From NCBI GenBank assembly GCA_002269645.1, contig NIVC01000201.1, positions 186,001-250,000 on the forward strand: a stretch of DNA of 64,000 nt, read 5' to 3'. The position numbers and the translations under genes were made by a program. Under the pieces are notes generated by a model, which saw only the letters and a list, made by a program, of their open reading frames with translations, was not told the DNA's origin and did not search any database. This DNA is from Macrostomum lignano (taxonomy: Eukaryota). This document shows, in pieces, positions 44,380 to 44,802 of this stretch (the stretch's first letter is position 1; every line of letters begins with the position of its first letter).

Positions 44380-44802
44380 TTAGCCGCGGTAGCGGAAGCA
44401 GCGCCTCCTGCGGAAGATGCGCCTGCGGAAGATGCGCCTGCGGTAGAAGCGCCTACGGAAGATGCGCCTGCGGAAGATGCGCCTGCGGTAGAAGCGCCTA
44501 CGGAAGATGCGCCTGCGGAAGATGCGCCTGCGGAAGTAGCGCCGCCTGCCGAACCTAATTCGGAGCTTTTCTTCCGGATTTGTGCTCTCATCGGACTCGG
44601 CCAACTCGGACTCGGCCAGGTCGGGCTCGGCCAGGTCGGACTCGGCAAGGTCGGGCTCGGCCTGGTCGGGCTCGGCCAGATCGGCCAGTGCGGAGGAGGA
44701 CACCTTTTCGAGGTTTTCGTCTTCTTCTTTGTGCTCAGCCGGGCTGGCGTAGACCGCCAGCGCCATGCACAGGAGGAGACCGAGGGCGAACTGCCACTTC
44801 AT
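44380..44802 (-). CDS. Secreted prepropeptide: signal peptide + acidic pro-piece + Arg/aromatic repeat polycation (candidate antimicrobial or secretory peptide), 140 aa
   Basis: MKWQFALGLLLCMALAVYA signal, then acidic (D/E)LAE(P/S)-type pentamers x6, then KLRIRFG, nine RRR(I/Y/F)(F/Y) pentamers and RRRRCFRYRG. Single exon with an upstream TATA and a downstream AATAAA. Confidence 0.85.
   Translation of the reverse strand: MKWQFALGLLLCMALAVYASPAEHKEEDENLEKVSSSALADLAEPDQAEPDLAESDLAEPDLAESELAESDESTNPEEKLRIRFGRRRYFRRRIFRRRIFRRRFYRRRIFRRRIFRRRFYRRRIFRRRIFRRRRCFRYRG

Follow-up and report, generated by a model that had tools for sequence, protein, structure and literature searches.

The precursors of the alpha-defensins and of eosinophil major basic protein carry an anionic propiece which offsets the charge of the cationic cytotoxic mature domain during biosynthesis. 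In the amphibian dermaseptin superfamily and in the cone-snail toxins a conserved signal and prepro part is joined to a hypervariable mature peptide, and the genes form multigene families with birth-and-death evolution. The arminin of Hydra, described by Augustin et al. in 2009, reportedly consists of a signal peptide, a negatively charged N-terminal region and a cationic C-terminal antimicrobial peptide. Protamines, Pro/Arg peptides of the PR-39/Bac type, (RW)n peptides and oligo-arginine bind polyanions, cross membranes and kill bacteria without forming an amphipathic helix. The gene described here lies on the minus strand of a 64,000-nucleotide stretch of DNA (contig NIVC01000201.1, positions 186,001 to 250,000; this whole stretch is called the window) and codes for a putative secreted precursor in which an acidic propiece precedes an Arg-rich tail of RRRIF-type repeats. 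We assign it to an unnamed multigene family with at least nine distinct members, called the MKWQ family below. Its product would be a secreted, charge-masked polycationic effector, most likely for antimicrobial host defence, and in this reading we place about half of our belief.

Parts of the family have been listed before. Irvine et al. (2023, PLoS Pathog, S5 File; PMC10414684) used a pipeline with a signal-peptide call, a propeptide-site prediction and a panel of tools for prediction of antimicrobial peptides (AMPs), and three M. lignano groups of the family, fAMP-LP 116, 142 and 518/519, are listed there as AMP-like (Table 1). The six predicted peptides were positive in 72.7-100% of the tools, the best one of each gene in at least 90.9%; propeptide sites were predicted for these relatives, and a signal peptide which differs by one residue from that of the window gene was scored as such (PMC10414684 S5). 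The groups were listed separately, dropped for technical reasons before prioritisation and not linked as one family (PMC10414684). They are true homologues of the window gene with signal peptide, acidic propiece, junction Lys, cationic tail and promoter module in common, whereas the (RRRIF/RRRFY) array is found only in the window tail. A preliminary description of the locus had proposed a new antimicrobial peptide class. This was an overstatement, since the gene belongs to a family and is one of its expanded members; the others resemble ordinary short AMPs, and three of them were already listed as AMP-like.

The window gene is an intact, intronless open reading frame (ORF) of 140 codons, from ATG to a TAA stop codon at 44382-44380, and the GC content at third codon positions (GC3) is 0.86. 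The signal peptide MKWQFALGLLLCMALAVYA has the n/h/c layout with one Lys, a hydrophobic core of 13 residues and then A-V-Y-A before the predicted cut, which places Val at -3 and Ala at -1. Residues 20-78 (59 aa) contain 15 Glu, 7 Asp and 2 Lys. The C-terminal residues 79-140 (62 aa) contain 35 Arg, 1 Lys, 11 Phe, 7 Ile, 4 Tyr, 1 Leu, 1 Cys and 2 Gly, and the tail reads in order LRIRFG, RRRYF, (RRRIF-RRRIF-RRRFY) twice, and RRRIF-RRRIF-RRRRCF-RYRG. Lys79, at the junction PEEK/LRIR, is the presumed processing site, and the C-terminal Gly (...RYRG) could be an amide donor. Without its signal peptide the protein has a mass of 13 kDa and a single Cys. The preliminary description had given an intronless ORF flanked by TATA and AATAAA, and both elements are in place (TATAAA at 44894-44889, AATAAA at 44282-44277). 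Its 19-aa signal peptide (residues 1-19) and its 59-aa pro-region with 22 acidic residues and 2 Lys (residues 20-78) were likewise counted correctly. For the last 62 residues, 35 Arg, 1 Lys and the absence of acidic residues stand, but the spacers are not only Ile, Phe and Tyr, as had been claimed: one Leu, one Cys and two Gly are found as well.

An ORF on the opposite strand (44320-44814, +) starts with TTG and has neither signal peptide, promoter nor homologue, and the minus strand is therefore taken as the coding strand. That the window ORF represents a functional, real gene seems the best explanation of its intact reading frame, its promoter and poly(A) signal, its family features and its GC3. 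A Pfam search with the protein gave no family at E<=0.01, and a sequence search of the PDB gave one weak low-complexity match (Glr2806, E=7e-4) which was treated as spurious. AlphaFold2, run with a four-sequence alignment, returned a predicted local distance difference test score (pLDDT) of 58 and a predicted template modelling score (pTM) of 0.18; the acidic repeats were modelled as disordered and the tail was drawn as a long helix of low confidence.

A phmmer search with the window protein against 5.8 billion proteins gave one match only, the hypothetical protein PAA75715 of Macrostomum lignano (BOX15_Mlig025063g1, P0001; E=3.9e-17), whose cluster mates are Mlig008283g1 and Mlig022283g1. A HMMER profile built from the window protein and its three closest M. 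lignano relatives was then searched against 1.84 billion representative proteins and gave eight matches. Three of these were bacterial low-complexity proteins with Tat-type signals; the other five carry a signal peptide of the form MKWQxALGLLLC and are further members, two at E<=2e-8 and three at 7e-5 to 1e-3. The family listing comprises PAA75715, PAA58863, PAA48540, PAA67680, PAA62922, PAA79923, PAA79709 and Mlig006956g2. The family is known from M. lignano and from one further sequencing sample (SRR31628392), and in the searches of 5.8 and 1.84 billion proteins no member was found beyond Macrostomum-like sequences. Neither tblastn nor a six-frame search with the hidden Markov model (HMM) found a further member inside the window. 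The M. lignano gene models were made from RNA sequencing (RNA-seq) data by genome-guided transcript assembly and TransDecoder (PMC5730564); the paralogue models being RNA-seq-derived, the paralogues are therefore transcribed.

The alignment of nine members shows a sharp division between what is shared and what varies. The signal peptide MKWQxALGLLLC (consensus MKWQxALGLLLCxALA) is conserved across the family, and at the N-terminus 22 of 23 residues are identical between the window protein and Mlig008283g1. The propiece has 37-60 residues, 10-22 of which are acidic. A Lys stands at the boundary between propiece and tail in all nine members (PEEK, PELK, PAEK, PQKK, LQKK, LKKK, VEQK) and is followed by Leu, Phe, Trp, Tyr or Ile. 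The tails themselves are hypervariable: 9-78 residues long, with 2-43 Lys/Arg, and mutually unalignable. They may be amphipathic, have a Cys loop, be a Pro/Arg repeat, or consist of (RRRYY)n or, in the window gene, of (RRRIF)n. Thus the search for paralogues with different repeat counts, proposed in the preliminary description, bore fruit in a family of at least nine with an (RRRYY)n copy among them (copy A in Table 1). The possible amidation donor noted there also recurs, as six of the nine members end in Gly. At the DNA level the first 69 nt of the window gene, coding for the signal peptide, are 96-97% identical to the copy B gene (MligB) and to the P0014 genes, whereas upstream DNA, propiece, tail and downstream DNA are only about 57-75% identical to them. 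Against the more distant P0022 the signal-peptide codons show 10 synonymous and 6 non-synonymous differences, which argues that the signal peptide has been under selection and is not merely of recent origin. A conserved prepro part joined to a hypervariable mature peptide is the textbook hallmark of families of antimicrobial peptides and of peptide toxins.

Most members also have a promoter element in common. The window gene has a perfect 12-nt inverted repeat upstream of its TATA box (Table 1), and the octamer AAAACGTG lies in the proximal arm at 44925-44918, about 24 nt 5' of the TATA box. The octamer occurs twice in the 64-kb window, both times within this inverted repeat at 44915-44962. 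The motif (R)AAAACGTG is found 13-30 nt upstream of TATA(A/T)A in the window gene, in MligA and MligB, in two head-to-head P0022 genes and in the gene at L005. MligA, MligB, L005 and the P0022 genes all have RAAAACGTG and then TATA in this order; the P0014 genes show a degenerate form of the module. At the TATA box the sequence GTCTATAAAT recurs without change in the B genes of M. lignano (L001-L003) and in the P0014 genes (L008/L009). This suggests AAAACGTG as a candidate binding site of a shared transcriptional regulator. Its ACGTG core may fit sites of the bHLH-PAS or bZIP/CrebA type.

On the M. lignano contigs NIVC01000866 (L001) and NIVC01002324 (L002) three copies of the family are found within 14 kb, and blocks around the window gene align to this syntenic locus with about 80-84% identity. 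The window is therefore taken to stem from another Macrostomum species or from a haplotype or subgenome that has diverged strongly. In copy A 29 of the 78 tail residues are aromatic. Copy C, which corresponds to the window gene by synteny, is broken: codons 1-7 and a promoter-like stretch before them (L001:11900-12127) lie about 1.6 kb from the body of the gene, and the same arrangement is found in L002. The body is without the core of the signal peptide and ends in ...EKFRIRFRFRKHRYFRRRSQF followed by a stop codon, after RYFRRRSQF. At copy B the database model PAA75715 (96 aa) lacks nine Arg/Tyr-repeat residues compared with direct translation of the locus L001:10001-10318, which gives 105 aa and equals PAA58863 (P0003); this shortfall is probably a repeat-collapse or spurious-intron artefact. 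Elsewhere in M. lignano two identical P0022-type genes with the tail WRRRRRFRWRKAIRVAGKVAKAVL stand head-to-head, 4-5 kb apart. Tandem and head-to-head duplicates together with one broken copy would thus indicate birth-and-death evolution.

The ORF contains two tandem arrays, one in the propiece and one in the tail, both with periods which are multiples of 3 (15/45 nt). The strong minisatellites of the window outside the ORF (score of at least 200 in Tandem Repeats Finder) mostly have periods of 16-25 nt which are not multiples of 3. With the in-frame periods, the GC3 and homologues of equal layout modelled from RNA-seq, the ORF is judged to exceed what chance would give. The acidic array exceeds that of the M. 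lignano B paralogues by 20 residues, and the propiece has 22 acidic residues compared with 15 in MligB; the array of the syntenic copy C is also shorter. Copy C aligns well with the window gene over the acidic repeats and past the junction, as far as CGC TAC TTC CGC NGG CGC (R-Y-F-R-R-R). Beyond this point copy C ends after three codons, whereas the window gene runs on with nine further 15-nt units. We infer that the (RRRIF)n tail arose recently, when a YFRRR-type unit was amplified in tandem in this lineage, because copy C is without the array and because the 45-nt super-repeats share 96% identity. A test of whether the two arrays, acidic and basic, are inverted copies of each other found no inverted repeat.

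The systems named at the outset resemble the window gene in part. Hydra arminin reportedly has the same order of parts, with an active peptide of about 31 aa and no tandem repeat; sequence similarity to it was not found in the searches of 5.8 and 1.84 billion proteins. The dermaseptin and cone-snail precursors are cut at a Lys-Arg site whereas the junction of the MKWQ family is a single Lys or Lys-Lys, and sequences and hosts are unrelated. The mature domains of alpha-defensins and major basic protein are folded and disulfide-bonded; the window tail is a low-complexity repeat, and its neutralisation is incomplete (+16). With the Arg-rich linear peptides the tail has in common an extreme Arg content and interspersed aromatic or hydrophobic residues, and the family member P0019 is itself a Pro/Arg repeat. 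PR-39/Bac peptides, however, come from cathelicidin precursors, (RW)n peptides are synthetic, and protamines are nuclear proteins without a signal peptide. In the same genus, Mlig-ap1 is also secreted and has a very basic repeat region which acts via charge interactions (PMC6410801). Its Lys/Arg-rich regions alone exceed 3,600 aa, and it has lectin and vWD domains (PMC6410801); it has no acidic propiece and no homology to the MKWQ family.

Several named identities were tried and rejected. A protamine would fit the Arg-rich tail (57%), and is ruled out by the signal peptide and the 60-aa acidic propiece, both present and conserved; the preliminary description had used the signal peptide in the same way. 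A cathelicidin is ruled out as there is no cathelin-like pro-domain (no Pfam family at E<=0.01), and myticalins and other lophotrochozoan AMP groups are ruled out because their anionic part is C-terminal, whereas in the window gene the anionic piece comes first. The survey of Irvine et al. found the customary lophotrochozoan AMP groups to be missing from flatworms, with no homologues of big defensin, CS-alpha-beta or myticalin (PMC10414684). An FMRFamide-like precursor is ruled out by a single RF-G-RRR site (residues 80-88) with none in the relatives, and by repeats without Gly. Adhesive proteins of the Mlig-ap1/ap2 type are very large and have lectin, vWD or EGF-type domains; the window protein has 140 aa and no Pfam domain. 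Proteins from bacterial metagenomes with Arg/Tyr- or Arg/Trp-rich tails were rejected as homologues, as they have no conserved region in common with the MKWQ family. These proteins (P0008, P0009, P0012, P0016, P0017, P0020 and P0011) begin with a signal of the Tat or Sec type, continue with an acidic linker and end in a tail like (RRRYW)n, (RRYY)n or (RRRFF), and no Pfam family was found for them. P0011 lies at L004:8001-8465 on a 34-kb bacterial contig beside radical-SAM, UDG, YidD, Nif11, PhoH and Ser/Thr-kinase genes. Their three-part charge layout is apparently a convergence of low-complexity look-alikes.

The antimicrobial reading is preferred because the signal peptide is conserved, the propiece balances charge, the processing site is basic, a terminal Gly is frequent, the tails are hypervariable, there are duplicates and a dead copy, and the promoter is shared. 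Dermaseptins, defensins and arminins show this pattern, as do families of secreted toxins. The precursor has a secretory signal and contains a net-cationic peptide, a tail predicted to carry +35 and no acidic residue. The signal peptide would take the precursor into the secretory pathway. The acidic propiece would mask the Arg-rich tail electrostatically during synthesis and storage and so shield the producing cell. A cut at or near Lys79 would free the polycation, the terminal Gly perhaps being converted to an amide, and the freed peptide would act outside the animal as a host-defence (antimicrobial) effector. Classical amphipathic pore formation is not expected of the window tail. Its action would rather be to bind or condense microbial polyanions (lipopolysaccharide, teichoic acids, nucleic acids) or to cross membranes by Arg-driven translocation, because the tail is 57% Arg, with aromatic/aliphatic pairs and no amphipathic face. 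Such is the action of protamine, Pro/Arg peptides and (RW)n peptides. One may go further and see in the precursor a self-masked polyampholyte, the 61-residue tail of which is a non-amphipathic host-defence peptide that condenses or phase-separates polyanions on the microbial surface and inside the cell, so that the microbes are killed or immobilised. This would be a new mechanistic type; we consider this extension doubtful.

The charge data bear on masking. Without signal peptide the net charge is between -7 and +5 in seven of the nine members; the two exceptions, the window protein (+16) and MligA (+29), both have expanded tails. Acidic and basic counts correlate weakly (Pearson r=0.67, n=9, the members not being independent). 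Over the whole window tail the hydrophobic moment amounts to only 0.09 at 100 degrees and to 0.22 at 180 degrees, and the best 18-mer reaches 0.38 and 0.52, respectively. The moment peaks only at 72 degrees, which is a trivial result of the 5-residue period. Some relatives are more amphipathic (P0018, 0.77 at 100 degrees; P0022, 0.83 at 180 degrees). The preliminary description had seen the classic AMP-precursor layout with an amphipathic mature peptide; the order of signal, anionic and cationic parts is real and conserved in the family, but the amphipathicity fails for the window tail.

It should be noted that a number of observations weigh against a role in host defence. The window tail is amphipathic neither as an alpha-helix nor as a beta-strand, one or the other of which is looked for in AMPs; it is also longer and far more Arg-rich than typical AMPs, and with a net charge of +16 the masking in the window protein is incomplete. 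The RRR runs are potential prohormone-convertase sites, and the tail might be cut on its way through the secretory pathway. As its syntenic counterpart in M. lignano is broken, the window locus may be dispensable. AlphaFold yields no confident structure of the protein, and no structural conclusion is drawn from the model. Tools for AMP prediction have a bias in favour of short cationic sequences of any kind. The main text of the searchable Macrostomum literature has no mention of the M. lignano gene IDs or sequences of the family, and a search of that literature for expression or activity data on the family found none. No ID of the family occurs in the supplements of PMC5977470, PMC5816591, PMC7336406 and PMC5946080; the single match there, to 'Mlig024774.g6', is an unrelated PRPF19 gene.

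A different use of the same properties would be a secretion that forms a material, i.e., a glue, mucus or rhabdite secretion, egg-shell or cement. The protein would then be a self-complementary polyampholyte with an Arg/aromatic 'sticker' tail and a polyanionic head, which forms a coacervate in the secretory granules and spreads or sets upon release into seawater. Acidic and basic halves in a single chain, a tail of nearly pure Arg, Phe, Tyr and Ile, and the 29 aromatic residues among the 78 of the (RRRYY)n tail of paralogue A would fit this, as would the disorder suggested by the model in which AlphaFold finds no fold. Adhesion of M. lignano is moreover known to need the extremely Lys/Arg-rich Mlig-ap1 and charge interactions (PMC6410801). 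However, the short tails (9-33 aa) of other members look like discrete peptides, the invariant Lys junction and the frequent C-terminal Gly point to peptide processing, and a protein of 13 kDa with one Cys and no adhesive-type domains is at variance with the known Macrostomum adhesive proteins, which are multi-domain and thousands of residues long. We consider such a function unlikely. Another reading is a fast-evolving reproductive or signalling peptide (seminal-fluid or prostate peptide, amidated hormone or neuropeptide), for example an LRIRF-amide cut from K/LRIRF-G-RRR and acting on receptors of the partner or of the animal itself. Amidated bioactive peptides typically have mono- or dibasic junctions and a C-terminal Gly, and K-LRIRF-G-RRR resembles the (Y)IRFamide peptides of flatworms. 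The family is moreover restricted to one taxon, has tandem duplicates and diverges quickly, and many orphan secreted prostate transcripts are known in Macrostomum (PMC5977470). Yet the RFG motif is found in no relative, the syntenic copy C included, and the tails differ in length and sequence far more than receptor ligands would, positive charge being their sole common property. The absence of family IDs from the supplements of the seminal-fluid screen points the same way, weakly, as that screen has a different ID system. A role of this kind appears quite improbable.

It may also be asked whether the gene is of use at all. Minisatellites abound throughout the window, the 45-nt repeats with their 96% identity must be very recent, the window holds a single family member, and the syntenic M. 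lignano copy is disrupted and has a short tail only. A slippage-prone minisatellite could thus have run away in a dispensable, decaying duplicate, with the ORF still open and a product no longer useful. Against such decay, both arrays are in frame, and the signal peptide, the junction Lys, the Gly, the TATA box, the promoter motif and the poly(A) signal are all intact; a long repeat tail has furthermore evolved separately in paralogue A, whose (RRRYY)n model is RNA-seq-derived. We hold decay to be highly unlikely. Finally, venom peptide families too combine a conserved prepro part with a mature peptide that is hypervariable, and the tail could be a cell-penetrating cytotoxic polycation directed at eukaryotes, be it prey, predators or competitors. 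Arg-rich repeats are cytotoxic and cell-penetrating, and the acidic propiece would shield the producer here as well. Macrostomum is a small grazer with no known venom apparatus, and toxin-type Cys frameworks are absent except in one member, so that a toxin of this sort would be surprising indeed.

Table 1. Positions of the features of the window gene, and its relatives with their tails and earlier listings (window coordinates unless a locus or gene is given)
Feature	Location or gene	Strand	Detail
Coding sequence	44380..44802	(-)	Family HMM fits only this frame, E=1.3e-29 (six-frame search; HMM built including the window sequence)
Signal peptide (predicted), residues 1-19	44746..44802	(-)	MKWQFALGLLLCMALAVYA; cut before residues SP; from sequence features
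Acidic propiece, residues 20-79	44566..44745	(-)	SPAEHKEEDENLEKVSSSALADLAEPDQAEPDLAESDLAEPDLAESELAESDESTNPEEK; 22 Asp/Glu; ends at Lys79 (PEEK/L)
Array (LAEPD/LAESD/LAESE)n in propiece, in frame	44591..44684	(-)	15 nt x6.3
Cationic tail, residues 80-140 (61 aa)	44383..44565	(-)	LRIRFGRRRYFRRRIFRRRIFRRRFYRRRIFRRRIFRRRFYRRRIFRRRIFRRRRCFRYRG; 35 Arg (57%), 0 acidic
Array coding for RRRIF/RRRFY repeats, in frame	44407..44543	(-)	15 nt x8.7 = 45 nt x3.0 at 96% identity
TATA box (TATAAA in gtcTATAAAtt)	44889..44894	(-)	87-92 nt 5' of ATG
12-nt perfect inverted repeat	44915..44962	(-)	Arms GAGCACGTTTTT (44962-44951) and AAAAACGTGCTC (44926-44915)
Poly(A) signal AATAAA	44277..44282	(-)	About 100 nt 3' of stop codon
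Copy A (MligA)	L002:266-712; BOX15_Mlig006956g2		Own signal peptide, acidic propiece, VEQK, 78-aa (RRRYY)n tail ending YYG
Copy B (MligB)	At 10001; Mlig008283g1/025063g1		Tail LFFRRRRRRHYFVYHSRRRYYRRRFYRRYYRRRYHRRHHVHIVAYHG
Copy C, syntenic counterpart of window gene, broken	L001:12097-12127; 13731-13922		First 7 codons; body
P0022-type pair	L006:5656-5973; 10001-10243	(-); (+)	
P0022-type pair	L007:4673-4993; 10001-10243	(-); (+)	
P0014	Mlig027113g1 / Mlig019489g1		Tail WFSRWFRITYRRRGGERRYLRSYFRLG
P0015, P0022-24	Mlig026085g1-2, Mlig024774g1-3		Tail WRRRRRFRWRKAIRVAGKVAKAVL
P0018	Mlig020420g1		Tail WRIKSACKIFRRLLHLARKCYAKKG
P0021	Mlig015087g2		Tail IFRVRVHIG
P0019	Genomic contig, run SRR31628392		Tail FLRVRLPRVRMPRVRLPRVRLPRLRVRFRWSKK; Pro/Arg repeat, (RLPRV)n
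fAMP-LP 116	Mlig008283g1		SP=Y; 38 aa; 90.9% of tools positive; removed: Same genome (PMC10414684)
fAMP-LP 116	Mlig025063g1		SP=Y; 29 aa; 72.7% of tools positive; removed: Same genome (PMC10414684)
fAMP-LP 142	Mlig024774g1/g2		SP=Y; FRWRKAIR(I/V)AGKVAKAVL; 100% of tools positive; removed: Same genome (PMC10414684)
fAMP-LP 518/519	Mlig006956g2		SP=Y; 44 aa, 26 aa; 90.9%, 72.7% of tools positive; removed: Ungrouped (PMC10414684)

The rest of the window contains an extraordinary density of micro- and minisatellites, with tracts at 289-3252, 4691-5347, 8286-8842, 9150-9598, 10241-11125, 14567-15728, 16047-17490, 20383-20843, 22243-23022, 49507-50935 and 63057-63372. Among them are about 3 kb of (CAGA)n, a perfect (AGT)260, a 19-nt unit repeated 76 times and a 24-nt unit repeated 60 times; several of these satellites create long spurious ORFs and a strong GC or AT skew. 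Five long, apparently intronless ORFs are found at 23248-24636 (+), 27354-29393 (+), 31256-36103 (+), 36914-38335 (-) and 39510-41357 (-). They code for a Cys-loop ligand-gated channel, the best database match of which is only 46% identical, a protein with an LRAT domain, two large proteins of ankyrin repeats and a protein with weak likeness to Mab-21. These neighbours mark the DNA as that of an animal, and the flatworm host implied in the preliminary description is right. A tRNA-Asn (GTT) gene lies at 25817-25890 (+). A dispersed repeat of about 190 nt is present at 43727-43920 and 13478-13657, and in the syntenic locus at L001:16564-16734 with about 80% identity, and probably represents a small mobile element.

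The order of signal peptide, anionic propiece and cationic peptide was already known, as was the computational flagging of three relatives. What appears to be new is a coherent, Macrostomum-restricted family with a shared promoter, and its extreme (RRRIF)n member with the origin of that tail by tandem expansion and a longer acidic partner. The window locus joins predictions which had been listed separately and discarded into one gene family with the evolutionary signature of immune effectors. It is a good candidate for a first AMP family of flatworms, in a genus which is tractable by RNA interference and transgenesis (PMC5730564). If the extended reading of a self-masked polyampholyte is true, the MKWQ family as a whole would be the first bona fide family of antimicrobial peptides in free-living flatworms. 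The (RRRIF)n and (RRRYY)n members are natural Arg-aromatic polycations with a built-in polyanion, which makes them relevant to work on cell-penetrating peptides, to the chemistry of coacervates and to peptide design. Should the function turn out to be adhesive or reproductive, the family would still be an uncharacterised, lineage-specific secretory innovation.

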